NCBI RefSeq assembly: GCF_021869535.1
Contig: NW_026262734.1
Coordinates: 52,948,001 to 53,012,000, forward strand
Length of the DNA stretch: 64,000 nt
Source of the DNA: Mytilus californianus
Taxonomy: Eukaryota
Direction: 5' to 3'
The notes under the pieces: generated by a model
Seen by the model: the letters and a program-made list of their open reading frames with translations, nothing else
Told to the model about the DNA's origin: nothing
Databases searched by the model: none
Position numbers and translations under genes: made by a program
Part shown: in pieces, positions 7,031 to 56,409 of the stretch
How positions within the stretch are numbered: position 1 is the first letter of the stretch
Layout: the number at the start of each line of letters is the position of its first letter

Positions 7031-7073
7031 GCACAAGGATAATAGTTACGCTGAACGGTGCCCACTGGTCACC
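7031..7073 (+). repeat. Left terminal inverted repeat (43 bp)
   Basis: GCACAAGGATAATAGTTACGCTGAACGGTGCCCACTGGTCACC; reverse complement of 56367-56409 with one mismatch at position 2. Confidence 0.95.
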
Positions 7074-7479
7074 TGAACAGAAACGGTTAAAATTGAGTCT
7101 ATACGCGACAAAAAATAGTACATGATTTCCGGTTTAAAGTGAAAGTACGTTACTAAGGGGATACTCAGTGCAGCATACTCAGTTTATAATTGCTGCTATA
7201 CAATACGGATATGAGCTTAATGCAAAGTTCTGGAATCACCATATTTCAAAGGATACTGTTGAGAGAGGTACAAAAAGTAAAAAATAATACACAAATAATC
7301 AATAATCATAATGATTCACTCAAAACAAACAATTGAAAATGCATAGAAGATTCATCTGTAACTCTATTAACGAGTGATATGGCTTATTTTTCAGAAAAAA
7401 AATAACCTAATGGCCTATATTGCACTCTCATGAAATATAACTAAAAAGATGGTATGCCTCGAACTCGGGTACCTTTAAA

Positions 7480-10400
7480 CTGCCATTGGTTACCTCTGGT
7501 CACCCTATACAGAAAATAATAGTGCATACAGTTACACTGGTCATTTGATACAAAATGCATAGTAACTTTATTAACCTTACTTCCTTTGCAGATAAATTTA
7601 CAGTGGTTCTTCTAATTAATTGACACATATATAGATATTGAATGGCCCTTAAACAGATATTGAATTTCTATACATCTTGTCACCTTTTACATAATTAATT
7701 GTGGTGACCTCTGGTCACCCAACACATGTATTGAATTGCAATAAACATTATAAGATATTGAATTTGGTTACCTCTTGTCAACCCGGCAAGCCTTCACAGA
7801 TATTGAATTTTGTTGCACCTTGTCACCTTTTACATAATTAATTGTGGTGACCTCTGGTCACCCTACACATATATTCTATTTTTTATCTTTAGACACTGTG
7901 CATAACTATTGAATTTATTTAACTTTAATAACCCTACTTAGATGTTTAATTTGGTAATATATGGACACCCTACCAAGATGTTGTATATGGTTAACCCTAA
8001 TCACTCTACAATGATGTTGAATATGGTTACCTCTGGGCACCCTACAAAGATATTGAATATGGTGACCTCTGGTCACCCTACCAAAATTTTGAACATGGTT
8101 CTTTCTGGTCACCCTACACATATATTGAATAAGGTTACCTCTAGTCATCTTACAAAGATATTGCATATGGTTACCTCTGGTCACCCTTCACATATACTGA
8201 ATATGGAAACCTCTGGTCACCCAACACAGATGTTTGAATTAGTTATAAACTTGCCATCCTACACAGATAATGATCACGGTTATATCTGGACATCTTTCAA
8301 ATACTTTTAATTGAGTTATGTTCGGTTTCAAAACCTACATACTGGCTTTAACCACCTCTTGTTACCCTAAATATGTCTTTATTTTGGTAATCTCTGGTTA
8401 CCCTACTAAGACAAATACAATCAAAACCAAGGAGTAAACAGATATACCAAAAGAAATTTACAACAACATTAAAAAAGTAAGGAACAACAGGAATCTTCTT
8501 AATCATGTCTTGAACGCTCCCATCGTGTGAGTTCTTTCTTAAGTCCGGTAATAATGAAAATGTACTGATGACTGTGCAAGAGTTTTAATATGATTAATCA
8601 TACATAAATTACTAAAATATTGAATTTGGTGACCTCTGGTCACCCTATACATATATGAACTTTAAATACCTCAAGTTACCCTACACAAATACTGAATTGG
8701 GTTACCTCTGGTCACCCTTCACATATTTTGAATGTGGTTACCTCTTATCTTACACAGATAGAAAACTTGATTACCTCTAGTCACCGTGCATAAATATTTA
8801 ATTTGGTTACCTATAGTTAGCCTACTTAAATATTTAATTTTGTAAACTTTGGTCATAAATTGAACGTGGTAACCTCTGATCAACGTACACAAATATTGAA
8901 AAAGGTAACCTCTGGTAAACAATTACAGATATTGAAAATGGTTACCTCTGGTCAACCTACAATAAATTGGCTTTTATTACCTATGGTTACAATTCATAAA
9001 TAATGAATTTGGTAAGCATCGGTTATCCCGGTTCACACTTTTGCGCTACTTTTATAATTAATATAGCAACTTCTGGTCGCTGTACACATACATTGAATTA
9101 TATTGCCATTGTCAACACACACATATATATATAGCAATTGCCTTTTTTGAATGTGGTAACCTCGGGTCGCCATACACAGATATAAAGTTATTTATCTTTA
9201 GACACCATACTTAAATATTGAATGTAGATACCTTTATTAAACCTACTAGTAAGCTGTTTATTTTGGTAATCTCTGGTCACACTGCCAAGATGATGAATGT
9301 GGTTACCTCTGGTCACCCTCCAAAGATATTGAATATGGTTACCTCTGGTCACCCAACCAAAACTTTGAATATGGTTACCTCTGGTCACCCTACACATATA
9401 TTGAATAAGGTTACTTCTGTTCACCCAACCAAAACTTTAAATATGGTTACCTCTGGTCACCCTACACAGATATGGAATAAGGTTACCTCTGGTCACTTTA
9501 CAAAGATATTGCATATGGTTATCTTTGGTCACCTAAAAAGATATTATATGTGGTAACCTCTGGTCTCCCTACACATATATTGACTATGGTTACCTCTGGT
9601 CACCCTACACATATTTTGAACATGGTTACCTCTGGTCACCTTACCAAAACTTTGAATATGGTTACCTCTGGTCACCTAACAAAGATATTGGATATGGTTT
9701 TTTTTGTCATCTAAAAAGATATTGAATGTGGTTACTTCTGGTCACCCTACAAAATATTGAGTATGGTTAGCTCTTGTTACTCTTCACAGATATTGAACAT
9801 GGTAACCTCTGGTCAACCTACAATAAATTGGCTTATGTTACCTATGGTTACAATTCATAAATAATGTATTTGGTTAGCATCTGTTATCCCGGTTCACACT
9901 TTTGCGCTTCTTTTATAATTAATATAGCAACTTCTGGTCGCTGTACACATACATTGAATTATGTTGCCATTGTCAACACATACATATATATATAGCAATT
10001 GCCTTTTTTGAATGTGGTAACCTCGGGTCGCCATACACAGATATAAAGTTATTTATATTTAGACACCATACATAAATATTGAATGTAGATACCTTTATTA
10101 AACCTACTAGTAAGCTGTTTATTTTGGTAATCTCTGGTCACACTGCCAAGATGATGAATGTGGTTACCTCTGGTCACCCTCCAAAGATATTGAATATGGT
10201 TACCTCTGGTCACCCTACAAAGATATTGAATAGGGTGACCTCTGGTCACCCAACCAAAACTTTGAATATAGTTACCTCTGGTCACGGTGCACCCTACACA
10301 TATATTGGATAAGGTTACTTCTGGTCACCCAACCAAAACTTTAAATATGGTTACCTCTGGTCACCCTACACAGATATTGAATAAGGTTACCTCTGGTCAC

Positions 10401-13400
10401 TTTACAAAGATATTGCACATGGTTATCTTTGGTCACCTAAAAAGATATTATATGTGGTAACCTCTGGTCTCCTTACACATATATTGACTATGGTTACCTC
10501 TGGTCACCCTACACATGTTTTGAACATGGTAACCTCTGGTCACCTTACCAAAACTTTGAATATGGTTACCTCTGGTCACCTAACAAAGATATTGGATATG
10601 GTTTTTTTTGTCATCTAAAAAGATATTGATTGTGGTTACTTCTGGTCACCCTACAAAATATTGAGTATGGTTAGCTCTTGTTACTCTACACAGATATTGA
10701 AAATGGTAACCTCTGGTCAACCTGCAATAAATTGGCTTATGTTACCTATGGTTACAATTCATAAATAATGTATTTGGTTAGCATCTGTTATCCCGGTTCA
10801 CACTTTTGCGCTACTTTTATAATTAATATAGCAACTTCTGGTCGCTGTACACATACATTGAATTATGTTGCCATTGTCAACACACACATATATATATAGC
10901 AATTGCCTTTTTTGAATGTGGTAACCTCTGGTCACCCTACACATATATTGAATAAGGTTACCTCTGGTCACCCAACCAAAACTTTAAATATGGTTACCTC
11001 TGGTCACACTGCCAAAATGATGAATGTGGTTACCTCTGGTCACCCTCCAAAGATATTGAATATGGTTACCTCTGGTCACCCTACACAGATATTGAATAAG
11101 GTTACCTCTGGTCCCCCAACCAAAACTTTGAATATAGTTACCTCTGGTCACACTGCCAAGATGATGAATGTGGTTACCTCTGGTCACCCTCCAAAGATAT
11201 TGAATATGGTAACCTCTGGTCACCCTACACATATATTGAATAAGGTTACCTCTGGTCACCCAACCAAAACTTTGAATATGGTTACCTCTGGTCACCCTAC
11301 ACATATATTGAATAAGGTTACCTTTGGTCACCCAACCAAAACTTTGAATATGGTTACCTCTGGTCACCCTACACAGATATTGAATAAGGTTAACTCTGGT
11401 CATTTTACAAAGATATTGCATATGGTTATCTTTGGTCACCTAAAAAGATATTATATGTGGTAACCTCTGGTCTCCCTACACATATATTGACTATGGTTAC
11501 CTCTGGTCACCCTACACATATTTTGAACATGGTAACCTCTGGTCACCTTACCAAAACTTTGAATATGGTTACCTCTGGTCACCTAACAAAGATATTGGAT
11601 ATGGTTTTTTTTGTCATCTAAAAAGATATTGATTGTGGTTACTTCTGGTCACCCTACAAATATATTGAGTATGGTTAGCTCTTGTTACTCTACACAGATA
11701 TTGAAAATGGTAACCTCTGGTCAACCTACAATAAATTGGCTTATGTTACATATGGTTACAATTCATAAATAATGTATTTGGTTAGCATCGGTTATCCCGG
11801 TTCACACTTTTTACGCTACTTTTATTATTAATATAGCAACTTCTGGTCGATGTACACATATATTAAATTATGTTGCCATTGTCAACAAAAATATATAGCA
11901 ATTGCCTTTTCTTAATGTAGTTACCTCGGGTCACCATACACATATATAAAATTATTTATCTTTAGACACCATGCATAAATATTGAATGTAGGTACTTTTA
12001 TTAAACCTACTAAGATGTTTATTTTGGTAATCTCTGGTCACACTACTAAGATGTTGAATGTGGTTACCTCTGGTCACCCTCCAAAAATATTGAATATGGT
12101 TACCTCTGGTCACCCTACAAAGATATTGAATATAGTAACCTCTGGTCAACCAACCAAAATTTTGAATATGGTTACCTCTGGTCACCCTACTAAAATTTTG
12201 AATATGGTTACCTCTGGTCACCTTACAAAGATATTGCATATGGTTATCTTTGGTCATCTAAAAAGAGTTTGAATGTGGTTACCTCTGGTCACCCTACACA
12301 TATATTAAGTATGGTTACCTCTGGTCACTCTACGCATAATTTGAACATGGTCACCTCTGGTCACCCACACAGATATTGGCTATGGTTACCTTTGGTCAAT
12401 CTATAAAAATTTGGCTTATGTTACCTATGGTTACAATTCATAAATAATGAATTTGGTTAGCAATGGTTATCTCGGTGCACACTTTTTGCGCTACTTTTAT
12501 AATTAATATAGCCACTTCTGGTCGATGTACACATATATTAAATTATGTAGCCGTTGTCAACAAATATATATAGCAATTGTTTTTTTTTAATGTGGTTACC
12601 TCGGGTCACCATACACAGATATACATTTATTTATCTTTAGACACCATGCATAAATATTGAATTTAGGTACCTTTATTAACCCTACTTAGATGTTTAATTT
12701 GGTAATCTCTGGTCACACTACAAAGATGTTAAATGTGATTACCTCTGGTCACCGTTCAAAAATATTGAATATGGTTACTTCTGGTCAACTTACAAAGATA
12801 TTAAATAGGGTGACCTCTGGTCACCCTACCACAATTGTGAATATGGTTACCTCTGGTCACCCTACACAGATATTGAATAAGGTTACCTCTGGACACCTTA
12901 CACAGATATTGACTAAGGTAACCTCTGGTCACCTTACAAAGATATTGCATATGGTTACCTCTGGTCACCCACACAGATATTGGCTATGGTTACCTCTGGT
13001 CATCCTACACAGATATTGAAAATGGTTACTTTTGGTCACCCTACAATAAATTGGCTTATGTTAACTATGGTGACAGTTCATAAGATGAATATCGTTGGTC
13101 AATTTAAAAGATATTGAATGTGGTTAACTCAGGTCATTCTACACAGATATTAAATATGTTTACCTCTGGCCCCCCTACACAGATTTCGAATTGGGTAACC
13201 CTTTCATATTATTGAATGAGATTACCTCCGGTCATCGTATACATATATTTACTTAAATTACCTCTGGTCACCCTTTACAGATTTGGAATGTGGTTACCTT
13301 TGGTCACCATACACAGGTATTAACTTTAGGTTCTGGTCACAATTCATAATTAATGAATCTTTATTAGCATCGATTATCTCGTTTCACACTATCCAGATGT
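7480..13400 (+). repeat. Left internal satellite: 36-bp unit (GGTTACCTCTGGTCACCCTACACAGATATTGAATAT-type) in ~0.7-1.0 kb higher-order repeats
   Basis: 36-bp period, seen as 12-aa periodic ORFs on both strands. The higher-order marker ATCCCGGTTCACAC and its variants occur at 9025, 9886, 10790, 11794, 12469 and 13376. Confidence 0.95.
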
Positions 13401-15074
13401 TAAATTTGGTTAACACTTCCCGCAACATTTATATTGAATATGAATATTGCTCATCATAAACAGATAATGATTATGGATATCTCTGGATACCCATCCTATA
13501 ATTTATTTACTTTTGGTAATCTGACGCAAATAATGTCTTAGGCAACCTCTTATTACCCTGAACTGCAATTCATTTTGGTTAAATCTGTTCATCCTATATA
13601 TAATTATATGACTTTTAAGGGGTCTCATGGTTTCTCCGGTTATATACAATTAATAAAAAAAAGATTTTGTTGACATTTTAAAAATAAATATGATATATTT
13701 CACATTCTCATTACAGGGTTTTTTGTTCGTGAATTAAATAGAGGAAATATGACAGGTGTAACAGGCGATTTTGAAGGTAATGGTTACAGTTTCAAACATA
13801 ATTATTTCATTAATCATAGTAGAGGTCATATTAAGACCAATATTCAATTCCTAAAATCAGAATTCGAAACGTAGGGTTGATAGTACAAATCAAATACTTC
13901 AAAAACTAGAAAAACTGCACAAATTCCAAAATTATAGTTAAGGAATGTCAAATTATGATACATTATCGCGGTGTATATTTGAAACATCGTTATTTATTCC
14001 GCCATTTCCATATCTTACAGGTTTGGAAAACTTTAATTTGGAAGACCTCCATGAATTGCGACATGAAGAAAAGGAAGAAGTTAAAAAACAGATTGAAGCC
14101 ATATATATTGAGGCAACCTCTTTGGAGAAAAAAGCCAGAGAATTGGGTATGAATTGTGTTTTCTCATTTATGCCCAAACCGCCACAAATGTCGTGATATT
14201 TTTCATACAGTATTGTATAGATTACGCTGTTTAGATCATACAATTGAGAAATAATTCATTTAGGCTTGAATTTATACTGATTTTACCACGGATTGACCTT
14301 TTATGCTAAATATTTTACAACGACCGATGGCATGGATAATATGCTCTTCATTTTTTAAAACTTTATTCAGCTACGATCAATTATCCTTGGCCAATTTGTA
14401 ATGGCTCAGCGACTGCGTATATATCTTTTTTAAAAGTGTTTCAAAATTAGTATCTTATTCCAACAAATCGAAAATTGTTACTGTTTTTGTTTTTTTGTGT
14501 ACATATGCAAATTGAAAAAATATGATTTATTCTAGGAAATTACACGCACAAATATTATATTTCCCTACCATTTTAGCATGTGATACAAATTCAAAACAGT
14601 ATATTCTTCGCCACGCACAAACCTTAACAGAAAAAGCAAATGAGATGAAAGAAAAGATATGCTTAGCATCAGGTGATTTATTTCTTTATCTGTATTATAT
14701 TATAGATATACATTTATAACACAGTAGTGTTATTTTTATGTTAATACTGTAGACTTTTGTAGTTGAATATATCTGTTGGCACGCAAATTGGAAACTGAAA
14801 AACAGAAAATTCAAAAGGCACTTAATCAAATCCACTTGTCATAACCAAATTGACAAAGCCACGACAATAAACACAAAATCGGGAACAAGACAAACATCAT
14901 TCCACGGAATTGGTTTGCGGTTTATTCCTTACTTTATCATTTGTTTATTATCTCAAAACTAGTGTACATAACACACTTTGGCAGTTCACTTAATACTGAT
15001 CAGTGTTTTATTTCAATTTTCTTATGATGCCCTTTATTAGTAAAAAGAAAGGATTCATATCAAATTTTTACTTC

Positions 15075-15147
15075 CCCACACACACATACCAGCACACCCA
15101 CATACACACCAACACAACAACACACATACACACACCAACACACAGAA
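15075..15147. repeat. Imperfect CA-rich microsatellite in a transposase intron
   Basis: CACACACACATACCAGCACACCCACATACACACCAACACAAC... Confidence 0.7.
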
Positions 15148-15422
15148 GGTCTGAAAAAGTTAATTTATAATTCTAAAGAGGTGAATGTCAACAACCTCAC
15201 AAAGAAATGAAAGAATCATAATTCATATTTTATTGTAAAATTCAGAGTTTACCCAGAATCATATCACTCTTAACAAATCTGTCAAATGATCCCTGAATAA
15301 ACAAGTAATATTTTCAATGATACGTTTTTATTACAATTGAATACACATAAGTATGTATAAACAATGTCATTTAGCTGTAAATTTGAAGTGAAGAAATGTT
15401 AACCTTATATTCTAATATTAAG

Positions 15423-16511
15423 GGAAATCATTCCAAACACCTGATGAACTACAAATTGCTATAAAGCAATCCATAGCTTCAAACGAGGAACAAACATTAA
15501 TAGTTGAGAGACTTAAGAGGAACTGTTCATCCCATGGCTTAGAATACAGAGGTCAAACACCAGGGAATGGGAATTGTTTTTTTGAAGCAATCACATGCCA
15601 GCTAGATAGAATTGGCGCAGACGTTATTGCTCCCGAACAATTAAGAACAAATGTTGTAAACTACATATCAACACATCCTAGTTTTGAGGTAAACTAATTT
15701 ACTTGTTAAATACATTCACTAATTATCAAACTCCTCCATGGACAGAAACATAAAGAATTAGTTGGACATGTTTTCAGGGGACAAATCAAAACCGTTGGCA
15801 ACAATAGTGGCGCATCAGCACAACTTAAATATATGATTTAAATCAGTTAAGAAGCTATTAACACACAAATACCATCAAAAATACTTCCGACAGAATATTA
15901 ATTTGGAATTGACGTAACTGCCCGTAATACCTGTGATTAATGCAATTTAATATTTAAAGATTTACAAACTGATAAAAGAATAAGCATCAGTTAAGACTTT
16001 CATATCAACCAGAATGCTTTTTTCTGCAGATGTTTAAATAAATCATTTACAGTTAATATAGTACAATGCTAAATAATAGGTATTGACAAAAAACAATAAA
16101 ATAAATAAAAAATGTATGTTATGATCATGATGATTTTTGATAAAATGTAGTTATAAAAGTATTTGTTTTGTATTAATCAATTTCAATGTACAGTAGTTAA
16201 TAAAGACTTATGTAAGTAGCTTTCTTTCAATCAATAGGGCAGTCAAGGCATTGTGTTATTAGAAAACTTCGTTGAAGACAATTTTCCGGACTACTGTGAC
16301 AGGATGTTACAGAATGGAGAGTACGCAGACCATGTTGTGGTCATTGGAATGTCCAGAATGCTACAGAGAGACATAGTTATTGTCACCAGTGCTCCCAGTA
16401 CCAATAATGAGGATAGTGTCCTTTGGGTAACTGGTTGTGATGGTTTTTCCGGTAATCCTATTCTTCTTGGGCACATTTTCGAAAACCACTACCAGTCACT
16501 CCAGCCAAAAG
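15423..16511 (+). CDS. UIM-like motif plus OTU cysteine protease domain (two exons) within the transposase gene
   Basis: DELQIAIKQSI (LxxAxxxS), then RGQTPGNGNCFFEAI (Cys 15575-15577), GEYADHVVVIGMS and ILLGHIFENHYQSL (His 16487-16489). Confidence 0.88.
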
Positions 16512-17989
16512 GTAACTGATAATAGAAATTATATAATTTATGATTATCTCTCAGAAAGAGATACCTTTACAGTTATAGTTTAAAGTAACGCATATGTAAA
16601 TCTATGTTAAAAAAATAATGTCTACGGTTGATAGTTGGGAAATATCTTATAACACGAGATATAGTTGTGGAATCTGTTAATCTAATGATTCCAATAAAAT
16701 TTGATAATTTGTTTAGATTATTTACAAAAAGTCATACTCTTCTTGTCTGACTTCATCGGGCATGATCACCTATTCCAATGACGTCATTATATAAAATTCA
16801 GAGGAAAGCAAAATATTTGTCGTCATTATTATATTTCGACTAAGGAAGGACTTCGATCAAGTGACCCACGTTTGGTAAAATGTTGATCAATATTGTGCTC
16901 AGAAAGGAATAAATACCATAGAATCAGTAAAATGTCCATATTTATATATTTGATATTTTATCAAATTGTTTTTGGCAAAACGAAATGAAATAAGTTTACT
17001 TTAACTTTGTTCTTCATTAGGCATTTTCACATTTTCGATAGGAGCGACCCTAATGAGTCTACGTAGACGGAACACATTTTTAAGCCTTATATCTTTGAAT
17101 TAGGTAGATCATCACTATATATCTGTATATCGCCATCTTGAATTGTAAAATAGCAGCACACAAGCGACAAAGTTCTTTATTTAAAACTGCAAATTTTGAG
17201 ACATAAATGCTATTCATTTTTAAAACTCTTGTTTGATAAATGTAAATAAGTGCATTATATCATTGAAAAAATAAGTGTTATTGTAAAAACCGGCTATCAG
17301 TCTTTGTTTGATTCAATTTGTCAACTGAGCTAATTAACGGAAGATAACTTATTTGGTGAATTTTCTTTAAAGGAATGATAATGAAATTTCTATTTTTCGC
17401 AAGAAAACGGGATTTATTTTCACCCTTTTTCTTTTGATTTTCTACTAAATTGTGGCTATGTATAAGAAAATTATGTCTGAGAAAAAAATTCAGTAATGAT
17501 CTACCTTAAATCGTTTTACGTTTTTTCACTGTAGACTGTTTTTGAAAAAGAAAAATATTAAAGGAAGTATTGTAAATGTGATATTTATATAAGTTTACTT
17601 TACATAATTTGATTACATAATTACTGCATTGATATCAATCAGCATTAGAGGCAAAGTTTTTCTAATTGGCAAATACATTCAGATGCAAAAAAGCTTTATT
17701 TTAACAGATAAACTAGTATTAATTATAAATTATTACGTTTTTTTGTTAATTGTAACGTTTATACAACAAATTTTAGGTGACAGTGGCAAACTTGATCACC
17801 ACACGAATGATAAGCATGCAACAAATGATGATAACCTTTTTATTCCTGTTGATGTGTGCAACGAAGAACTCAGCAACTATAACATGACACATGATGTTGA
17901 AGGTACAATATTGTTCCTTCGGAAATGTTCACTAGCCATACTTATCATCAGTGATTTTAAAATGATTTGAATAACTTATAATTAGCGGG

Positions 17990-21852: not shown

Positions 21853-21869
21853 AAATAACACATTATCCG

Positions 21870-44720: not shown

Positions 44721-45792
44721 AAGAATAAACAAAATCCATGAAGAGAAACTAAAGGTTAATATTTTTAAAGTCAGTACAATTCAGAGTAAAAATATATACT
44801 CAAATTATTAAATTGCAATATAAAAAAAGGGTAACCTCTCTGTCAAGTATAGATTACCTTGAACAACACGAACCATTTAGTGCTTTTAAATAAGTGTGGG
44901 TGAAACATAAAAAAATTAATAGCTTAACGTGAACTTACTTCTAGCGAAAACTGTGTGAATTATATATATTCATAGGAATTAATTCAGAAGCATGCTTTAT
45001 TATTTTTTCTGCATGCATTTATGTTTATCTATCATTGATTATAATGTAATGTAAAATTGATACAGGATAGAAATGAAGTTGTGATAAAGATACATGACTT
45101 CACAGCAGAGATAATAAATAAGGAAATTGTAATTATTGTGTCAAGCAGAACATTAAGTGAGAACTATAATATGTAAAAGTAGTGGCATATTGACTACACA
45201 TTGATTATATTTGAAGCGTACAGATTTAGGATAAAGCACACCAAACTAAAAGTTCACAGTATTTTATACATTACCATACATCTGTATATAAGAAACAAAA
45301 AAATAAATAAAATCCAACAGCTTATACAATGCAAACAAGAAACTGACAAGTTATATAACAAAATCATTTGAAAAGACAATATTTAAAGAAGACTTGAAAA
45401 GTAGTGTGCACTAAGCAAACGGTACCTATGCCAGCGTCATTCTGTATTAATCAACTAAGTCATGAGGGGGAACATTAAACGTCTGCCTTTACCATGTGAG
45501 TCTGAATGTGAGAACAACAAATCTTTGGATTTCAAAGATATCTTAGAATAAGTTCATTTAGTGCAATCTATAAAAAATGTAAGAAATATCAACATGAATA
45601 TATCTACAAAAATTAATAAGTCGACTTCTGTTATGAAATTAAACGCAACTTATAGAATTATTGAACAAATGGAAGAACAATGATCATTCTACAATTTTGT
45701 TATATCGCATTTTGTCCTTGCAAATTAAATTCTATTTCATTGTATTACTTTAAAAAAAAAATAGAAATGGTAGAATTTTCTATTGCACTCAC

Positions 45793-46175
45793 CAGGTGGA
45801 AAAATTGAGCACAAACTGCATAGTCCTGGAGTCATACACTTTTTGTGGAAATTCCTTTTACAGCATGAACATGCTCTCTGCAATATTTAATAGACATGTT
45901 CAAATTCTATGAATTAATGTAGTTATTGCGAAAAATGTTAATATTAGTGAAAGTTCATCAAATTGATATAAAAAAAAACATTTATATTCTAACCTACAAT
46001 ATCACAAGGTTCTGTTAAAAAATTATCAATTTTAACCATAAAACGTATTTAAATAAGCAATAAAAATAATAAAGCACCCTGTTAAGTTGAACATCAACGA
46101 TCTATAAATGTATATTTACCATGTTAGTTGGTTCTTTAGCACACAAGAAGCATGTCATAACAGCACCTTTTGTTT
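45793..46175 (-). CDS. PHD finger (C4HC3) encoded by two exons
   Basis: TCFLCAKEPTNM|RACSCCKRNFHKKCMTPGLCSLC; strong GTAAAT and GTGAGT donors. Confidence 0.8.
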
Positions 46176-49100
46176 CTATAGTAAAATAGAAATAGATGTT
46201 AACATGAATTAGGAACAACATTCTTCTGCTCCAAATCACAAATTGCAGCAGCTGATAATAAGTCATAAAATTGAAAATGTTTACACTTGGTTGATGTTAT
46301 TTTTTACGTTCCTTCCCGTAGATGGTAATTATGATGGTGATGCTCATTGATGACAGCGGCAGTTTATATGAAGAAGACAATCGCATAAATATATCGGCTA
46401 ACTTAATTAGACCTACAAAAACTAGTTGATTTTTAAACATCTACTTTCCATGTTTATATTTTCATTAATAAGATCGTAATATTTGACAACAACACATTAT
46501 CATACATATATAAGACATGGAATATCATAAAAATAAGTACAGTTTGAGCTGTAGAAAAAAGAGAGAAATTATTACAGAAAACAACCGGAATTATTAAGCT
46601 ATTATTTCCAAACTACATTTTTAAGTATAACATATCAATAATGAATAATACATTAAAGAAACATAAATACATCATTTATAGCGTAAAGAAATTTGGTCAG
46701 AAACAATAGATAAAATTAAAAACAAATCATCAATGAATTGAGATAAACATCAAAGAAAAGGATTTCAAACACATTATTGAACATGTTAAAATTCATATTC
46801 CCTTTTTATTAGATTCACTTATTGTCTAGCAAGAAGATATTAAGTATTTACATAACATACGGTACTATTAGTAAATGCTTTTATTCTATTGATTACTTAC
46901 GCACAGCTTGAACAATTTCACTGCCAATTGTGAATCTTTCAGCTAGGACGTTTAATTCCAAAGATGTATCTGTCTTACTTAGGTATCGGTCGAGGAACTA
47001 AAAAAATAATTCTTAAATGTACACATTGTTTTGTAAATTTTCTATGGCCTGTTCAAAACTGAATGTTTAAATTACTGAAATGATTCATGTAGGCCTAATA
47101 ATGATATAAAAATGTTTTTTTTACAAAAGGTAAATTAAAAGTACCACATATTTATTTGTTTTTCTTTCCATTACATTTAAAGTAATTTATGCAAATCATA
47201 GATTTGGTTAAATTTCACACAACCTTTGTGCTTTGCGGATTTTACTGAAATAGTTTACATGATATATATTCCAAGTTATTGTTTACACATATTTAAATAA
47301 ACAGGTTTGGGAAACAAGTTGTTTACAACTTACAACAATATTTTGTTCATCTTGTTTGTACGATTCTGCCTTTTTTTCAAAATCAACAAGGGTGTCTTTT
47401 ACGTGCAAAATTGTGATCTTTATTAGTATATATATATATCATTGATTTAAGATTCAAGCTTCAATTGAACTTTCATTTATTAACTCTCAATTCATACATG
47501 CAAAGCCCAATGTTTTATGTACCTTCAAACAATAAACACCACATGAGCTAAAATCATTTTGCAGAGGATACCCAACTGCTGTACAGATTGTCCATGTACC
47601 AAGATCTCTGCTTTTAGTGAAGTAGCTACATAATATAATATGAAAAGAAAAATGTGTTACTTAAAATTGATATATATTAAAAAGTCAAGCTGGCTATAGC
47701 CATAATGCCAGCCATTGCCTTACCCCGGACTGTATCATAGAACTTACATGTCTAGCTAGATGTATGATACTTAAGGAGATATTGCACATTCCATAGAAAA
47801 CCGTTCATTTGACCAACCTTTCTAATGTAGGAAAAAAAATATTTGCAGCTGTTTTAAAGTTGATATCAACAACGTTTGGAAAAAAATAACTGGTCTTCAG
47901 TTCTTACTGCTATATTCAATTTACAAAGCTGTGCAATCAATAATACAATTATAGTTCAATTCCAGTATCAACCAGAAGTAATTTTCATTTTAGATTAACA
48001 AATTATATTTCTCTAGATTTGTCCTTATAACTTGTGACTCACTTCTGAAAATTTCAGAATTATAAACCTTTTTTTAAGTATATATATCAAACACAGAAAT
48101 AAAAATTTACTTTGAAACAAATCACATGCATTAAAGCAATAAACGACTGTCATGTAACTACAGTTTCAATCTTACTTGAAATTCTTTTCATATGTTCTCA
48201 ATTTCTTTGATATTTTGAGCGGGTCCATACTTGTCACAATATGGTGTTGGACATCCATAACCTGAAACAAAAATTATTCTCTCTTTTTAATTTCACATAC
48301 TTAAATCTGTTTACATTAACATTTATAAAAAAATAAATATTTTGCTTAATTACTGGTTGTTGCTCAATGTTCAGAAGCAAATATTTGATAATATTCTATA
48401 CGAAGAAGCCAATATTTTATATCTGATATTTCTTTTCTAACTATCATTTCCATGCAGTATAAATGCTTTCATATAAATGAGTGCAATATCAGTTGGAAAA
48501 ATGTATGAGAAAATATATATATTAAGTCAAGTAAGTTGAATTAAGTTATAGAAGAACAACTAACATGACTAAAAACTCAACGAAATGTCTGAAATGCTGT
48601 TCTTGCAACTCATTTTTCTATTAACTTATAACCTCATGGAAAAATGCCTGAATAGTGTAATTAATAACATTAATTGAGCAAATAAACCTACCACAGCAAC
48701 CCAATGACACTTCCCGTCATTAATGCACCCAATGACAGTGTCATACTGTTGTATATCGTCCTAAAAAAGTATTGTAAAATGTTATTATTAACTTGCAAAC
48801 TGATAAAAAAAAAGACCGATGAAACATTAAATACATTTTATAAACAGCAATATAATACCATACACAATACAATATTTAGCATATTGTTTTATTATTTATC
48901 ATTTGATAATTTACATATATCATCAATATGTTAGAATGTCTTATTATTTTGTTAAAACGTGAAAGGCGAATTGGTAATATCCAGCTTTTAGCTGTAAAAA
49001 GAGTAATCTATGTGTAAATCAAAAGCACTTATATAAAAAGAGTTTATAACAGATGATTATATAGTATTATACCTTTTTAAACCAAGTTACGCTTTTCCTC

Positions 49101-52100
49101 CCTTCAAAAATTGAGGTCAGAATCAGACAATCTGCACGGGACACTTTCTGGAAAACGGAAATATGTATAAAACAAATTGTGTGACAAGAACATTGGATTT
49201 ATTTAACTGTTTCTATTACATCGGAACGTGAAATTATATAAGGTTTTTCTTGCCTGGTTCAATACTTCTTCAAAGTCAGTATGAAATTACCCATCAAAAA
49301 TACGAGGAATAAAAGTAAATTCATTTTTCTCATAGTTAATGAGTTGTGCATATATTTCCTTAACGACAATTCCAAATGGGATATAACTCTTATAAGGAAT
49401 ATCCAGATAGCTTCGGTTAAATAATATATGACATCATAAGGGTGTAACGGGTAATTGAGTAAACTAATAAAAGATCGCAGTAGATGTATCTACACGCAAA
49501 ATCGAGATTGGGGAGGTAACTCTATTAATGAGAGTAAAAAGTCTTCGTTAGGGCAATGGCGAAAGCTCATAAGCTGTACGATATCATATAAAACAAAGTC
49601 AAAGCTATATCTGTTAAAAATAATAGCTCAACTTAAAAAAGGCGAACAAAATATAAATAATAATATCAAAATAATGATAATAATTATAATCCTTAAGTAA
49701 AGCTAAAAGTCTTTCAACCGAAAGGTAGAAAGACCTTAAATTATATAAAAGGGAAAAAATAAAAGATGATTTAGTGGAACAAATTTTTCATTCTCTGCAA
49801 AAAGGGTGGTGGGTGCGAAAGTAACTTTTACAATACACAGTTTACTTTGGTGAAATTGAAAATGAATAAAAAATGCATAAAACAAGTTTAGAATGATAAT
49901 TCAGATACCCTTAATGGAGGAATGGATCATGTAGAAAAAGCGAAATTAAATGAATTGATCCTGGAAGTTACAAAAAAATAAGCATGCTTTAAAGTAGCCG
50001 ATGAAAAAATCAGTCAACTCTAAAATAAATGCACTGAAATATGATAAAACGGTTATTAAATAAATACTTTTAATTCGTTTACCTGTACACACTGATCCGT
50101 CCGTTTTTGCAGTACACTACAATAAAGATTAATTATCTGAAAAAAAAAAGAAAATGATAAGGTCAGATCTTTTCAATCAGTATGATACAAAGGAAACCAT
50201 CAACAAAACTAAATATCACAAAGGTGAAGACATACAAGTTTGATCAAGATAACACATAACATAAAGTACCATGATTATGTTATCAGTTTAAGACAGATTA
50301 TTTAAAAAAATCCTTGTACATTTTATAGAACTAAATAAAATCAAAAGACCTCCAAAAACCTGAATGACTTACCTGCATTTTTTTTGTTGTTAAATCTTTC
50401 ATCAATGATTATTTCTGCTTTTCAATGGAAATAAAGTAGTGCTTACATTGTCAAATTGGTATTTAATTTTTTTTGGTATCTGTCATATTTTCTTCAATGG
50501 CAAAACAATGCATTTTAAACCAATATGCTATTAAGCCATAGTGACTATATTTCTTGGCATAAAAGAAAACACAATTACTTTCAGGCCAGTAACTCTTTAA
50601 GGGGTCACAAAAATTAGCAATTTAGTGGCATCAACCAAACAATGGGTAGTTTTATTTGTCTGAAAATGCTTTACCTAATGAACCTTTTCACCAATGTCAG
50701 ATTTAATTTTATTTTAGATACCCTAAGGATGATTAAGCTTACGTTTGGTTGGAATTGGTTCAGTAGTTTCAGAGGAGAGTTCAAGATCTTTGAAAACGTT
50801 TAACCTTTATTACATAAATTAAACCATTAGTACTGTTACCTGATCATTCAACTCCTCCTCAATTTTTAAGCTCATTAAATCCGATACGTAAAGAACATTC
50901 CCATACACCGTACCAAACTTTTCGTCAGCATTTCCTTTCCATGAATTCCATATAGTTTCCAAAAATGCTTTAAATAAATAATCATTTTTAACAATCAAAG
51001 TAATACAAATAATAATACCTGAAACAAATGACATCAATTAAGTTTCTTTTAAATTTTGGAATTCTACGAAAACAGAAGTGCAATCTTGTTTAGCACAGAA
51101 GATCACAATATTTGGGTAGGGTGACCAGAAGTAGCCGCAGTCAATATTATATAAACAATAGGTGCCATATTATTTAAGTCTATAACCGTTTAAATTGCAA
51201 AGAGGTAATAAAGGTTTACAAGTTACAGAATGACATGAGGTAATTAATATCAACATATGTGTAGGGTTAGCAGAGTAAGTCAGAAACTATGTAGGGTGAC
51301 CAGAGGTCAACCAAAGTCACTATCAGTGAAGGGCGACAAGATGTAACCAGTCAATATATTTGTAAGGTAAGCGAATGTTAACTAAGACAATATGCGTAGG
51401 GTGACCAGATTTAATCAAAGAATATATATCTGTTTAAATGTCGCAGAGCTAGCCAAAGTTCATAACTTTGTCACCTGACTAAAGTTAACTAAAATCAATA
51501 TATGTGTAAGATGACCACAGGTTACAAAAGTCAATTACTATGTAAGGTGACCAAATGTAGAGAAAGTCAATAAATGGGAAGGGGTGACCAGAGGGCACCA
51601 GTCCATAAATCTGTAGGGGACAAATGTAACCCAAATCTGTATATGTGTGAACTGCCTACAAGTTAACAAGTTTGATAATTGTGCGGGGGTAACTCAGGTC
51701 AATAACTTAGTAGGAAAAAAGGTTATAAAGTCATTTTATGTGAAGGGTGACCAGAGGCAACCTAAGCCAATATATGAGTAGGGTGACCAGAGATAACCGA
51801 AGTTAATATCTGTGTTAGGTGACCAGAGGTAACCAAAGTTAATATATGTGAAAGGTGACCAGAGGGCACCAGTCAATAAATCTCTATGGCGACCAGATGT
51901 AATCTTTAATCAAAATCTATATCTATGTAAACTGCCGACAGCAAACGAAAGACAATATCTGTCACGTGTATGGCGTTAGGAAGTAACCAGTTTCAATATA
52001 TATGAAGGGTGACCAAAGGTAACCATTGTTTAATCTGGAAGATATGATTTTAGTATGCACACAATTACTGCACAGAGTTTGGTAATTTTAATTTTCCAAC

Positions 52101-54909
52101 GAAAGAAAGAGGTAGGGCCAATATGCCGAGGATTTTTTTTCACAGAAGGGCCAATTTCAAAAAGTGCCGACAGAATAAAATTTACTATAAAAACAAAAAA
52201 TAAAAATGCTTTTTGATCAATATCTCGATTTACATATAGTATGATATGTGTGATCAATAGTTAATTTAACCCTAAAAAATGATGAAAATCCAATATCCGG
52301 ATTTTCGGGTGTTTTTATGTGGAAAAAACAGGGAATCCCCCAAGAAGGACATTTCAAACCAAAAAAAAGTTATGCTTTTTATGACTGTTGTTATACATAC
52401 TACTTTTTACTTCAAAAATGAAATTGGTTTAGTGTGTCCTTATTACATAAAAAACAACTTTTTAAAGAAAAAATTGTAACATCGATAAATTGTACCGATA
52501 TACCTTCTAAATAAGAGTCATAATGATCAGAATCGCCGTAGCTCCACCATTAGAGCACAGAACTACTAATAAATGATGAATTTGAAGAAAGGGTTCGAAC
52601 CTCGCTCAGAACTTTTGCATTTTTTTGTGTTGTTATATTAAATTTTAAAGTTTCTATCATATTTTTTCGGATGTTTGCTTGACTCATAGAGTCATTCTGG
52701 TTCATTTTGACTATTCAGTTAGTTTACTAGTATATAATTTTACGTGTATCAAAGAAAAATAATGTATCGCTTATTGTGTGCAATCCTATGACTGTCCATA
52801 CTCTTGAATTACTTTCTATTCATGTGTTTACATTATTACGTATTTCCAAGGGACAACTGCCGTCAAATTGATGTAGGTGCCTGTACATAACCAATAACAC
52901 GAGAATTAATTCTATAGAAATTAAGCCTACATGTTGCGGGTGTAATATACACATAACTTAAAATAAGGCCATTGTATACAAGTTTCATAACAACAAAAAA
53001 CAATTCGTCGAAACCTTTTTTGAACATGGTATTATATGTAACAAATGCAGTCAACAACAATTTTGTCGCCAAATCACAAACTGTAAAGATACTAGTACTG
53101 AAATTTTTACCACCTTCTATACACGGGTACCTAACTCATCAGAAAAATAAAACAACATAACAGAACAAATCAATTACACTACAAATCGCGATTGTAGGTA
53201 AAACATCAAGAAGCTGTTGCATCTGTATCACAACGAAGGGCCGATTTGTTAAAATTACAGAAAAGGCAATAAAACATGAAGTAGTAACACAGGGTGATCT
53301 ATGACCAACTGATGTAAGATGTTCTCCGGTTTTAATTTTATATACATGTACATGTATTTTCTTGTCTTATCTTATAGACGATAAAACCTTAAAAGACCAG
53401 GACAAATACAGATATACATATTCAAAATGAGAAAATCACGATTTGAATTAGTTCGATATTATTTGGCTCCTTGACAATTTACATGGTATGGCACCTCGCA
53501 TAAAGGATGTTAATAATAAAATAAAATCAATATTAAAAAAACAATAGTCTTGGCCTTGTTTTTGTAGGAATACCTGTTCAAGGTATGAAAATAAATAATG
53601 TGACGTATTTTCTTGTACTATAATTAGCATCTATCGGGCTATTTAAAACATTATTTACCTATCTTATCGAATGAAACAAATCTCCGGCAAATTGGCCCTC
53701 CCTCTTTATTTTTTTGGATTCCTAGCAATTTTATGTTATGGTTTACGTCTACTTTGAAATTTAATTGTAATTTTATTTATTTCATATCGGTTCAGAATAA
53801 GATTCTCTTATTGGATAAAAAGGGGTAATATGACATTCATTATTTTTCAGTAATAAATTCCATCCTTCATTAACAGAACAAAACGGACCAGAAAACTGGT
53901 CGTTAACGAACTTTTACATGAGAATGACAGGTGGGCGTGGTTTCCGTCTGATAATGACCGTTGAGGCGTGGTTTCTCTGTAAATGACCGTTGGGGCGTGG
54001 TTTCTCTGTTAATGACCAATGGGGCGTGGTTTCTCTGTTTAGAGAGATTTATCCATTTTTAAAACATGTTCCTTTCTTTAATATTATATTTAATTTGTTG
54101 AATTGTTTATTATTTGTTTTTGTTAATAATAAAATTAAAGAGAACTTGATTAAGTATTTATATACTGAAAAATTGCACTAAAATGAATGGGAGTATTCCT
54201 ACAACTGGTCTTCACTCTCTGCCATACAAATCAACTACTCGAGTTCGCTTTAGGCATTTTGAATTAATGAAAATTTTCAAAACATAGTTCCTCAATGAAA
54301 TAAACATAATAGTTCTTCAAAAAAGACTGGTCATTATCGTGATACATGGACTGCCCGTAGGACAGTAATATTGACTATGACAGCGATAATGACCTCGCCT
54401 TCGCGTCATTATCGCTACCTTAGTCAATACCACTGTCCTGTGAGCGGTCCAACTATTATATAAATATTAAATCCTGAATTAAAAGGATTAAGTCGATTAG
54501 AATGTGACCTTACTCTTAATACTGTTCAATGGCATTTTAATATAATTACACCAACTATATATAGCTAACAACATTACAAATGTCTACATTCATAAATACA
54601 TATAAATATGTTACTGGTTGAGTTGACAAATAAAACTGTAAGATCAGCATAACATCAGAAGAAACCTTCTCAAGCTCAAGAGATAAATCATTGAAAAATA
54701 TTATTAAAAGTAAATGTCATAATATGGAACCTTCTGGTACTCTTGATCAAACCTCTAAAGTAGGTAAATCCCTAACTTTGTATTGTGTAACTTTTGTCTT
54801 TCGTTTGTAAGGTGGCACTAGATCAATAGCATTTCCTTTCTTCTTGAAGATAAATATAGAATTGATTTAAAAACTTACCTTTACTTCTTTCTTTTATGAC
54901 AGCTAACAT
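45793..54909 (-). CDS. Ulp1/SENP-family (peptidase C48) cysteine protease plus PHD finger; intact reading frame
   Basis: Exons 54879-54909 (ATG, tentative), 50840-50967, 50083-50136, 49073-49147, 48692-48760, 48176-48261, 47523-47625, 46901-46997, 46120-46175 and 45793-45877 are GT-AG, phase-compatible and stop-free. Motifs: SDLMSL..EELNDQIINLY, VTWFKKDDIQQYDTVIGCINDGKCHWVAVVMD (His, Asp), YPLQNDFSSCGVYCLKF (Gln, Cys). The 3' end is either 45554-45567 (DCTK*) or the 29.4-31.3 kb exons. Confidence 0.86.
51110..52030 (-). repeat. Block of inverted 36-bp satellite motifs in the first coding intron of the Ulp1-PHD gene
   Basis: Repeated AGGGTGACCAGAGGTAACCAAAGTTAATAT; spacer subtype is the reverse complement of that at 21870-22560. 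Confidence 0.8.
53923..54039 (+). repeat. Four copies of a 29-30 bp unit containing a GC-box-like GGGCGTGG
   Basis: AATGACCGTTGGGGCGTGGTTTCTCTGTT-type units starting at 53923, 53953, 53982 and 54011. Confidence 0.85.
54347..54451. repeat. Imperfect palindromic hairpin repeat with a CTCGCCTTCG centre
   Basis: GGAC..GGACAGTAATATTGACTA..GCGATAATGAC-loop-GTCATTATCGC..TAGTCAATACCACTGTCC..GTCC. Confidence 0.7.
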
Positions 54910-54996
54910 TATCCTTAAAAAATATTAAAATACAGTTCATCCATTGCTTAAGTTATCTTAACATTATCAATATCATCAACTACATGTATAAGATTA

Positions 54997-55997
54997 GGCC
55001 GTGTTCACATTGACTTAAACTCGGTGTTGTGTTAGTGTAACTCACACATTAACTAAAGATAATTGCGTTCCCATTGATAAAACTTAATGTTTACATGAAG
55101 ATTTAATCAAGACTCATCTATCATCTTTGCCGAACACATAGTTCATTTGAAAAGGTCTTCCTGAATCGATCAGACGTACACACTGACAGAAATATTTGCC
55201 ACTGGTCTTTATACTCAAACAGCGATTCACTTATAAATGCATTACTGAAAAAGGGGGAGGTTAATTGTTTGTTTGTGTAGTATCTGAGACTCGTTAAAAT
55301 ACTATTAGAAATAATAAAAAAAACATTCTCCCCTCCCTTTGACAAATACTCCTTGGATAAAAAAAAAAATAGCACTTGAAACAAACAGAAGAGATAGAAA
55401 TGTAGTGATCCTTAACATAGCAATTCTTTTTCTTCGTCTGTAAGCACGCTAATGGCAATCCTACGTTTTTAATGCGTAATCGAGACATCTTTAAACTACT
55501 GCAAATCATCCAAAATGACTTTCTTAAAGGAGCAACCACTTTACTTCAAAAAAAAGGGAGAGGGGTTCTGAGTTCTCGCGCGAAAGTTTATAATTAGTTT
55601 TTTTTCGATGGTACCAATTTATATAATATTTAACATGTTTAACACTATAATGTATGGGAAAACGTTTGATTCAGAATATTTGTTCATTCTATAATTGTCT
55701 GAATGTCTCAATTTTTTTTTTAAATCTAATTGTGGAAAAATCCACCCCCCCCCCCCCCCCTTTTTTAAAGTCAAGTGGTCGTTTATTAACTGTAGAAAAG
55801 TTGTTCGAAAATTTGAATTCGGTTCTACGTAATGAACATTTAAATGACATATAGTTTACGAGTGTGAACAAATCTTATGTACATGTAACTAAACAAGGTG
55901 TATAGATGTGAACAAATTTAATGTGAAACTAGCGTACATTACATTAAACCAAATGTAAACATGTTTACTGTACACGACGTTTGGTGTGAACACGGCC
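54997..55997. mobile_element. PIF/Harbinger-type MITE (1,001 bp) nested near the right end of the MULE
   Basis: 13-bp TIR GGCCGTGTTCACA / TGTGAACACGGCC, flanked by a TTA target duplication (54994-54996 and 55998-56000); no coding capacity seen. Confidence 0.85.
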
Positions 55998-56366
55998 TTA
56001 GTGAATTATTTATTTTGTGAATTTTTTTTATATCTACTTCTACTTAGAGTCTTAGGGTGAATATATCCTTCTAGTCTGTGATTCGAACATTTAAAAAAAA
56101 CGTGTCATCACAAATGACAAATCATGCAAAATGGATGAAACAATCATTTTGCTTTGAATGACTTAATTAAACTTAATATGCTTAAGTTTGTGTTATTCAT
56201 TGTATTCAATTGCTCGGTATGTTAATTTTACTTACAGATAATACAGACGGTGACAGGCTCTATGGTGTATTGCTAAATAGAAAGATGAATTGTCTATTTT
56301 AAGCTTTCTATTTTTAGACATGTGTTAGAACTACAATATTACTACACACAAGAGCACTATTTATAG

Positions 56367-56409
56367 GGTGACCAGTGGGCACCGTTCAGCGTAACTATTA
56401 TCCTTGTCC
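56367..56409 (-). repeat. Right terminal inverted repeat (43 bp)
   Basis: GGTGACCAGTGGGCACCGTTCAGCGTAACTATTATCCTTGTCC. Confidence 0.95.

Follow-up and report, generated by a model that had tools for sequence, protein, structure and literature searches.

The transposons of the Mutator superfamily (MULEs) create target-site duplications (TSDs) of 8-11 bp, typically 9 bp, and their terminal inverted repeats (TIRs) are reported at lengths of 14-500 bp (PMC6446971). Cargo in natural DNA transposons is usually limited to a few kb, natural cut-and-paste transposons are thought to be less efficient past a few kilobases, and the recognised giant transposons of eukaryotes work by other mechanisms (PMC6431247). 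Polinton/Maverick elements, Teratorn, Helitrons and Starships reach tens of kilobases, and are self-synthesising, virus-fused, rolling-circle or tyrosine-recombinase systems with many genes. The element described here, found in a 64-kb stretch of Mytilus californianus DNA (the window), shares their length, but is a plain TIR/TSD cut-and-paste transposon with a bulk made of repeats and introns. It is most probably a genuine, though defective, copy of a giant foldback-like MULE, and ranks with the largest clean-ended transposons of the cut-and-paste kind so far seen in animals.

In foldback elements of the Mutator superfamily (Drosophila FB and Tetris), each end begins with a short flanking domain, after which come variable, terminus-derived tandem repeats, and the TSDs measure 8-10 bp; the repeats have been proposed as extra transposase-binding sites and can seed satellite DNA (PMC4079207). 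The mussel element likewise has a TSD in this range and terminus-derived tandem repeats at its ends. However, its exact inverted repeat is only 43 bp, its arms are degenerate and measure 5.8 versus 13.4 kb, and it is roughly ten times larger; the mussel family also includes copies that encode a MULE transposase, while for Tetris no autonomous copy is known. Rehavkus and Phantom MULEs combine a 9-bp TSD with an internal minisatellite (PMC6446971, Table 1), as does the mussel element when compared by description, but their minisatellites lie near or after the ORF rather than in two inverted kilobase arms.

Mutator transposases have been reported with an Ulp1 and PHD finger combination, and Ginger1 and Helitron/Helentron elements encode an OTU cysteine protease in the polypeptide of the transposition enzyme (PMC2836005, PMC6431247). 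Like the Ulp1-bearing MULEs (plant KI-MULEs/VANDAL, hydra and lancelet MuDR), the mussel element is a Mutator transposon with a putative SUMO-protease-like domain; its Ulp1-like exons, of moderately supported identity, instead belong to a gene of their own, split by introns and lying on the minus strand 18 kb away from the transposase, and the transposase is fused to another type of deubiquitinase, an OTU. The joining of OTU and transposition enzyme in one polypeptide is shared with Ginger1 and Helitron/Helentron, but the OTU lies C-terminal to a Gypsy-like integrase in Ginger1, within RepHel in Helitron/Helentron, and N-terminal to the MULE DDE in the mussel; a non-exhaustive literature search found no earlier report of an OTU-MULE fusion. 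The ZSWIM1/3-related MULEs of fish, amphibians, hemichordates and echinoderms (PF10551 and PF21056), annotated as 'uncharacterized' and compared as proteins, have zinc finger, DDE, CWFH and SWIM collinear with the mussel transposase at 25-65% identity per exon, but are 700-880 aa long and have no OTU.

Results

Element ends and target site

The left TIR (7031..7073, plus strand), a 43-bp sequence with the first bases GCACAAGG and the inner end CTGGTCACC, was identical at 42 of 43 positions to the reverse complement of the 43-bp right TIR (56367..56409, minus strand). The sole mismatch fell at base 2 of the repeat (C versus G), and similarity between the two ends stopped sharply past base 43. 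The 9-bp TSD GTGCTCCTA abuts both termini, at 7022..7030 on the left and 56410..56418 on the right, giving an element of 49,379 bp from end to end (7031-56409). The 39-nt core of the TIR occurred only twice in the 64-kb window, at these two ends, and a 42/43 inverted match combined with a 9/9 flank match in 64 kb rules out chance. An earlier note on this DNA had claimed 43-bp inverted termini with a 9-bp flanking duplication, and these alignments bear it out. Since one TSD is common to both ends, both derive from one insertion.

At locus L003, both element flanks were homologous to one unbroken, 73%-identical paralogous stretch. Additional copies of the flanking repeat (a 'SINE' in the earlier note), sought within the window to rebuild the empty site, were not found, and tRNA and Rfam scans of that repeat gave no match, leaving a tRNA origin unconfirmed. 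The ORF across the empty site was considered as a protein query for uninterrupted copies of the flank repeat and dropped, a stop lying 4 codons from the junction. No empty-site allele was recovered, and neither junction was crossed by a read or contig; at the right junction the Logan contigs end 30 nt inside the TIR, a limit set by their k=31 graph, and so bear on neither junction contiguity nor the empty allele. Exact-pattern scans of metagenome contigs for the empty-site junction as predicted, and of metagenome and viral contigs for the TIR, gave 0 matches each, which carry little weight because these collections probably contain no mussel DNA.

Related copies in Mytilus

A complete second copy was found in M. 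trossulus (L002). It measures 14,504 bp, with TIRs identical at 43/43 positions and the TSD ATGTGACCT on each side, and so supplies the other TIR pair with a 9-bp TSD that the earlier note had proposed as a check. The TSDs of both copies fall inside the 8-11 bp Mutator/MULE range, and their 43-bp TIRs inside the MULE range. Five loci from three species (the window, L002, L004, L007 and L009) begin at the same terminal base amid unrelated flanks, and over 120 bp the left termini of the latter four are 97.5-100% identical to that of the window. L008 contributed a right TIR with a short-form end. L001 and L003, fragmentary or rearranged copies, were left out of the comparison.

Four loci (L005, L006, L007 and L009) were collinear with the window at 99.0-99.5% identity. 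Their combined cover is 7031-37852, so that the sibling comparison refers to this part of the window and 37.9-56.06 kb lies outside it. L009 in M. californianus covers 7031-37852 on its own: starting at the left TIR, it is collinear over at least 31.3 kb at ~99% identity and still continues where the locus ends, which indicates that large size is not limited to the window locus; judged by these alignments, large size is probably a trait of the family. Siblings at ~99% occupy several chromosomal sites in M. californianus. One 90% cluster includes at least 14 gene models of this species, located on at least 6 records. In run X5, contigs of the right end (53.6-56.39 kb) had a depth of 115-147 against 3.6 for a contig of unique flank, a ratio of ~30-40x that serves only as a rough proxy for copy number; right-end contigs were near-identical in three organisms. 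The short forms L002 and L008 belong to a subfamily 86-93% identical, separate from the 99% subfamily of the window.

Transposase gene

The transposase gene (13749..27832, plus strand) comprises 20 GT-AG exons and ~1,068 codons, arranged as OTU-zinc finger-MULE(DDE)-SWIM. Exons were placed by tblastn with the Mytilus models P0110, P0104, P0102, P0120 and P0124 and the distant relatives P0072 and P0079, and the splice junctions were then solved. On the plus strand, exons 1-5 lie at 13749-13776, 14021-14146, 14577-14672, 15423-15688 and 16238-16511; exons 6-10 at 17777-17902, 19020-19101, 19523-19636, 20108-20186 and 20784-20928; exons 11-15 at 21451-21590, 22631-22717, 23223-23323, 23433-23607 and 24304-24400; and exons 16-20 at 24728-24838, 25504-25673, 26189-26290, 26498-26724 and 27171-27832. 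The gene thus spans 14.1 kb for 3.2 kb of coding sequence, with a largest exon of 220 codons.

The exon at 24304-24400 matched the Pfam MULE family PF10551 (E 6.6e-6). All three members of the DDE triad (first D, 23302-23322; second D, 24311-24325; E, 25654-25674), a CxxH motif (CWFH, 24380-24394) and a SWIM CxC...CxH motif split across two exons (26697-26714 with 27173-27190) are readable on the plus strand. Relatives of the transposase carry PF10551 and PF21056, close homologues have the UniRef name 'SWIM-type domain-containing', and the best Atlas cluster has PF04434 in 19% of its members; the Pfam SWIM model gave no significant match on the separate exon pieces. A SWIM finger downstream of the catalytic domain is a feature of many MULEs, though not of all. 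The candidate N-terminal zinc finger corresponds to exons at 19523-21590, which can be aligned with the N-terminal Cys/His-rich part of P0072, P0079 and P0081. Upstream, the OTU cysteine-protease exons (15423..16511, plus strand) include a Cys box at 15563-15589 and a His box at 16481-16498, and two exon pieces matched Pfam OTU at E 0.043 and 4.7e-4. Models P0110 and P0124 are 98-100% identical in these exons, and both carry PF02338. The RefSeq model P0124 (994 aa) combines PF02338 OTU, PF21056 and PF10551 in a single product, and maps to the window exon by exon.

The internal DDE and SWIM transposase announced in the earlier note is therefore present, with a frame interrupted twice. The first break is an additional base in an A-run of exon 9 (20121..20138, plus strand, near 20127), a +1 frameshift leading to a first stop at codon 389. 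The run is one base shorter, and in frame, in L005, L007 and L009, and of window length in L006; as the break lies in a homopolymer, an assembly error is possible. An alternative splice, 19629|20108, restores the exon 9 frame and was rejected, since it loses a conserved Cys-Glu-Arg-Cys and conflicts with P0124. The second break is an in-frame TAA in exon 17 (25528..25530, plus strand), which falls after the second D of the triad and before its E; eight other copies (L001-L007 and L009) have AAA or CAA at this codon. Together the two breaks indicate that the window copy is not autonomous; its sibling L009 encodes a 994-aa product without interruption. The M. edulis copy, L004, was not used to judge the reading frame, having too many 1-3 nt indels. 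Farther along the element, minus-strand ORFs at 29.4-30.4 kb underlie sibling RefSeq models of 297-505 aa; they had no Pfam match and no clear conservation in diverged copies.

Satellite arms

The transposase gene is bracketed by two arms of a 36-bp satellite containing the inner motif of the TIR. The left subterminal arm (7496..13289, plus strand) is 5.8 kb long, with arrays called by TRF at 7962-8239 and 9264-13289; the right arm (31314..44742, minus strand) is 13.4 kb long and organises the same repeat into a higher-order unit of ~803 bp. The motif CTGGTCACC had 52 plus-strand matches, all on the left (1 in the left TIR and 51 within 7496-13272), and 52 minus-strand matches, all on the right side. 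These 104 occurrences compare with 0.12 expected, are strictly split by strand with 0 outside the element, and change polarity in a single clean flip. Opposed 36-bp-repeat arms containing the inner 9-mer of the TIR are a foldback-like trait; being degenerate (repeats 65-88% self-similar) and unequal (5.8 and 13.4 kb), they are not long exact TIRs. Satellite makes up ~41% of the element and transposase coding sequence 6.5%, and these shares, with the 14.1-kb gene, agree with the earlier view that introns and satellites inflate it.

Arrays of such self-similar repeats are where an assembly might fail, and N gaps lie in or beside the arms in two other Mytilus assemblies (L004 28217-28316 and L008 9774-9873). 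We nevertheless regard it as very unlikely that the ends are real and the interior mis-joined or over-expanded within the satellite, because the same TSD at both ends marks one insertion, the window contains no Ns, and 22.7 kb of it, 6.5 kb of this being arm, recur in an independent assembly with a net length difference of 6-11 bp.

The arms do vary between copies, from 2.2 kb to 5.8 kb on the left, and part of the 49 kb may accordingly have arisen in place. Carried further, this would mean that an ordinary element (~15-30 kb) inserted and was later inflated, by arm expansion through unequal exchange and by gain of the 11-kb Ulp1 segment considered below, so that a unit of 49 kb would never have moved. 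The regular 803-bp higher-order repeat of the right arm, typical of local amplification, and the right arms of only 3.5-5 kb in the short forms L002 (14.5 kb) and L008 fit this account. Against it, L005 and L009 match the right arm collinearly over its initial 6.3-6.5 kb at ~99%, which makes the arm older than these copies.

Right segment and Ulp1-like exons

Between the right arm and the right terminus, the window copy has a long-form segment (44743..56058, minus strand) with Ulp1-like (peptidase C48) exons. A His box (48629-48760), a Cys box (47490-47660) and a Cys-rich piece (45740-45886) were recognised on the minus strand, and a satellite patch is embedded at 51000-52050. Atlas (language-model) features linked two collinear exons to Peptidase_C48 clusters at 0.95 and 0.87, with 84 and 91 of 100 matches; on single exons, Pfam C48 was not significant (best E 0.19) and a PDB phmmer search returned nothing. 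Based on the language-model features, identification of these exons as an Ulp1-like protease is moderately supported. The last unique segment before the TIR (56059..56366, minus strand) is common to the short forms, being matched at 86-88% by L002 28055-28394 and L008 26168-26501.

The segment 44743..56058 is missing from both L002 and L008, and in related subfamilies of M. trossulus and M. edulis the satellite is joined straight to the last 350 bp, so later acquisition of these 11 kb is possible. Yet one unbranched contig, at multi-copy depth, contains the junction at 56059 in three organisms, the subfamily of the short forms is not that of the window, and no nested-element TIR or TSD was seen around 44.7-56.06 kb (no convincing TIRs around 44.3-56.4 kb). 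Together with the age of the right arm, these observations make later inflation of a smaller insertion unlikely in our assessment.

Absence of the Ulp1-like exons from other subfamilies, and the resemblance of ~1 kb (54994-56002) to DNA beyond the L002 copy, might also be read as macro-transposition: two ends or elements would once have carried off the host DNA bracketed between them, such as a host Ulp1/SENP-like gene, leaving a composite with an incoherent interior. We give this scant credence. The window has no internal TIR copies, motif polarity flips once and cleanly, and the order end-arm-transposase-arm-end is that of L002; moreover, the 3 kb at the right end, to which the 5' side of the Ulp1 region belongs, are multi-copy, and MULEs of hydra, lancelet and plants repeatedly carry Ulp1 together with a PHD finger (PMC2836005).

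Discussion

Most likely, 7031-56409 represents a single insertion of a Mytilus cut-and-paste MULE with foldback-like architecture. The earlier proposal of a single, unusually large Mutator unit is supported by the TIR/TSD structure, the MULE and SWIM features, the L002 pair and the sibling of at least 31.3 kb, with the amendment that the window copy is not autonomous. For transposition, we envisage that the putative N-terminal zinc finger of the transposase would bind the inner motif of the TIR and its many subterminal copies, that bound transposase would bring both ends together, and that the DDE domain, making a cut staggered by 9 bp, would excise and reinsert the element as a whole. The window copy may have been moved in trans by an intact sibling, or may have acquired its mutations once inserted. 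Both proteases, OTU and Ulp1-like, might modulate ubiquitin/SUMO-dependent repair or silencing during transposition, and unequal exchange would lengthen or shorten the arms, setting element size.

A more tentative proposal, on the doubtful side in our judgement, is that the family forms a lineage of 30-50 kb cut-and-paste MULEs, active now or until very recently, with an OTU-fused transposase, a SUMO-protease-like partner gene and arms acting as arrays of transposase-binding sites. If so, natural DDE transposition would tolerate ~50 kb between ends, and whole satellite arrays would be moved around the genomes of mussels, where they would seed satellite DNA and give rise to large hemizygous presence/absence variants. 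A 49-kb TIR/TSD MULE with ~99% siblings at several loci, at least one of them of at least 31 kb, offers a natural test of the size limit of cut-and-paste. Satellite arrays borne and copied within a transposon provide a concrete case of a proposed route of satellite dispersal in bivalves, and the fusion of a DDE transposase to a deubiquitinase is relevant to the proposed involvement of ubiquitin/SUMO pathways in transposition.

ORF-based discovery of transposable elements would miss intron-rich transposase genes of this kind. Curation of bivalve elements demanded ORFs >300 aa (PMC10294476), a filter that would plausibly overlook a gene with a largest exon of 220 aa. Genome annotations now present pieces of the transposase gene as many 'uncharacterized' host genes.

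Termini and target site duplication

The element at 7031-56409 has the near-exact 43-bp terminal inverted repeats (TIRs) and the shared flank that the earlier note had claimed for it. Bases 7031-7073 match the reverse complement of 56367-56409 at all but one of 43 positions, the likeness breaking off at base 43, and the same 9-bp sequence, GTGCTCCTA, lies on both sides (7022-7030 and 56410-56418). The TIR core has no third site within the window, which contains zero Ns, and the element measures 49,379 bp. A search of the window for elements nested inside it found no internal TIR copies and no convincing boundaries. The target site duplication (TSD), the TIRs, a DDE/MULE domain and a SWIM motif together place the element among the Mutator-like elements (MULEs).

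A multi-exon transposase gene with an OTU domain

Guided by Mytilus gene models and distant full-length relatives, exon placement gave a transposase gene at 13749-27832 with 20 GT-AG exons and about 1,068 codons. On the plus strand, its domains run from an OTU protease (Cys box 15563-15589, His box 16481-16498) through a Cys/His-rich N-terminal transposase region (19523-21590) and the MULE catalytic domain (D at 23302-23322, D at 24311-24325, CWFH at 24380-24394 and E at 25654-25674) to a SWIM CxC...CxH motif divided by the last intron. Pfam recognized MULE on one exon (E 6.6e-6) and OTU weakly on two. With that match and the D/D/E, CWFH and CxC...CxH motifs located, the internal DDE+SWIM transposase proposed earlier is confirmed.

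The 994-aa RefSeq product P0124 (XP_052075386.1), from a sibling M. californianus copy (L009), carries OTU, ZSWIM1-3_RNaseH-like and MULE domains in one protein and corresponds exon by exon to the window; in P0104, an M. edulis gene model, an OTU exon is likewise spliced to MULE exons. These models support, at the level of gene prediction, an OTU-transposase fusion. More remotely related proteins, from fishes, amphibians, hemichordates and echinoderms and annotated as 'uncharacterized', have the same two Pfam domains without OTU.

A transposon family in Mytilus

A search with the final exon (27089-27829) of the internal gene identified 80 relatives among 1.84 billion representatives, the nearest being annotated proteins of Mytilus galloprovincialis, M. 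coruscus, M. trossulus, M. edulis and M. californianus. The DNA around the closest-relative genes provided nine loci (L001-L009). L002, on M. trossulus chromosome CM071711.1, holds a complete copy of 14,504 bp with perfect 43-bp TIRs and its own 9-bp duplication, ATGTGACCT, which differs from the window's; a further TIR pair flanked by a 9-bp TSD, which the earlier note had proposed looking for, therefore exists. The left terminus begins at one common base (GCACAAGG...), is 97.5-100% identical to the window over 120 bp, and is adjoined by five unrelated flanks: those of the window, of L002, of L004 (M. edulis), and of L007 and L009 (both M. californianus). The right TIR is perfect in a second M. 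edulis locus, L008. The host is a mussel and the transposon family is genuine.

The L008 copy is split by a 2.6-kb insertion (11960-14592) whose 455-aa gene includes DUF3504 and matches phage integrase weakly, and which looks like a Crypton-like or tyrosine-recombinase element. Gaps of 100 Ns lie in or beside the satellite arms of the family in two published M. edulis assemblies (L004 28217-28316, L008 9774-9873), marking the family as an assembly breakpoint.

Four M. californianus loci are collinear with the window at 99.0-99.5% identity, a closeness that makes M. californianus, or a species very near to it, the likely source. Three are on chromosome record JAKFGE010000008.1: L005 at 94.4 Mb (matching window 14576-37614), L006 at 39.05 Mb (11795-34578) and L009 at 60.5 Mb (7031-37852); L007 is on scaffold JAKFGE010000024.1 (7031-29183). 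L009 runs 31.3 kb onward from its own left TIR, and the fetched locus ends still within the right satellite arm, 6.3-6.5 kb of which is repeated nearly base for base in L005 and L009. At least one sibling is thus large as well. L005, L006 and L007 are mutually about 99.6% identical over 7.3 kb of unique sequence, and each is 99.13-99.15% identical to the window. All four siblings contain some 270-290 bp that the window lacks at 15143/15144, in the intron preceding the first OTU exon.

In one 90% protein cluster, the M. californianus gene models under different names number at least 14, spread over six or more records. Across 53.6-56.39 kb, Logan contigs from three organisms show 0-2 differences per 400-800 nt; in one run (X5) right-end contig depth is 115-147, whereas a unique flank contig that matches perfectly has 3.6, which roughly indicates tens of copies, as a proxy and not a count. 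These contigs end at 56396, the point at which branching into the shared TIR is unavoidable for a k=31 graph, and so are uninformative on the junction. Contigs from two other organisms (runs X9 and X10) differ from the right end (53400-56396) at 0-2 positions, whereas identity is only 86-97% for the copies fetched from M. edulis (L004, L008) and M. trossulus (L002); the near-identity could stem from labelling, from introgression, or from a recent transfer among mussel species.

Satellite arms and the right-hand segment

The inner 9 bases of the TIR, CTGGTCACC, have 104 occurrences where 0.12 are expected: the 52 on the plus strand all lie within 7065-13272 and the 52 on the minus strand all within 32056-56375, with none in the window outside the element. 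The motif is held in a 36-bp repeat that forms a left arm of 5.8 kb and a right arm of 13.4 kb, the latter with a higher-order unit of ~803 bp; 51.0-52.05 kb holds an extra 1-kb satellite patch. Satellite accounts for 41% of the element, and the transposase gene spans 28.5% versus 6.5% for its coding exons, in agreement with the earlier claim of inflation by introns and satellites.

RefSeq minus-strand models of 297-505 aa without Pfam matches span the spacer and right arm in L005, L006 and L007 (window-equivalent 28.2-37.6 kb). The matching window ORFs (29402-29620 and 29998-30363) had no family match, and conservation was not evident.

In L002 and L008, an 86-93% identical subfamily, the segment at 44.7-56.06 kb is absent and satellite is joined straight to the last 350 bp (window 56059-56407). 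The corresponding long-form junction is crossed, in each of three organisms, by a multi-copy contig with no branches (55954-56396); among copies in the source species, then, the long form seems to prevail. About 1 kb of the window (54994-56002) is 75-87% similar to L002 11907-13472, which sits outside the M. trossulus copy, 420 bp upstream, and may represent either a distinct family of repeats or what is left of an older, related element at that target.

Two exons on the minus strand of the long-form segment bear a His box (48629-48760) and a Gln/Cys box (47490-47660), ordered as expected for peptidase C48. Protein-language-model features placed both among Peptidase_C48 clusters (scores 0.87 and 0.95; 91 and 84 of 100 matches), whereas the best Pfam E value was 0.19 and phmmer against PDB returned nothing; we therefore regard them as Ulp1-like with moderate support. 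Unrelated transposons repeatedly carry OTU and Ulp1 domains (Ginger1, Helitrons, and MuDR of hydra, lancelet and plants), and an action on ubiquitin/SUMO-dependent repair has been proposed for them (PMC2836005).

The architecture resembles that of foldback elements. By analogy with MuDR, En/Spm, Galileo and Tetris (PMC4079207), the repeated inner-TIR motif may be a transposase-binding site, and the arms would be expandable arrays of predicted sites that aid pairing of the distant ends, with the DDE domain making the staggered 9-bp cut. Bivalve MULEs (PMC10294476) and minisatellite-bearing MULEs (PMC6446971) are already known, and a review of giant transposons includes no MULE and emphasises the cargo limits of cut-and-paste elements (PMC6431247). 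The size, N-terminal OTU fusion and 20-exon gene stand out here.

A defective copy in a repetitive target

The window copy is defective. Exon 17 contains a TAA (25528-25530) at a codon that reads AAA or CAA in eight other copies, a robust nonsense substitution. The A-run of exon 9 is one base longer than in L005, L007 and L009, shifting the frame; since it is a homopolymer and L006 has the same length, the extra base may be an assembly error. L005, L006 and L007 each have one single-base frame problem, all different, and L009 has none, judged by its annotated product. Frame defects alongside an intact TSD and 42/43 TIRs fit a recent insertion, either mobilised in trans or damaged later.

The right flank is highly repetitive, with contig depth in the hundreds to thousands; neither ARAGORN nor Rfam recognized a tRNA-like head in it, leaving its 'SINE' label unconfirmed. 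In L003 (M. coruscus), homologues of the right (56426-57066) and left (6502-6751) flanks lie at most 880 nt apart in the same orientation at 72-74% identity, and a forced alignment passes through TGCTCCT at the insertion point. As judged from these alignments, this supports a reading in which the element interrupts one once-continuous repeat, the L003 stretch being a paralogue and not an empty allele.

Other features of the flanks include a minus-strand exon at 3-311 of a vitelline membrane outer layer protein I (VOMI) homologue (PF03762, E 2.3e-12), probably a host gene, 6.7 kb from the element's left end. In the right flank, a ~55-65-bp segment of extreme contig depth (56923-56987) is a hyper-abundant short repeat or MITE end: depth in bin 56800-56999 reaches 141,664 in run X1 and 283,870 in X5, and loose contig ends accumulate by hundreds at 56923-56934 and 56981-56987. 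A 430-bp interspersed repeat in the left flank (5221-5653) has three more copies immediately left of the L007 element (3481-5584) and another nested within it (19091-19517, equivalent to window 21235), and was therefore probably mobile recently.
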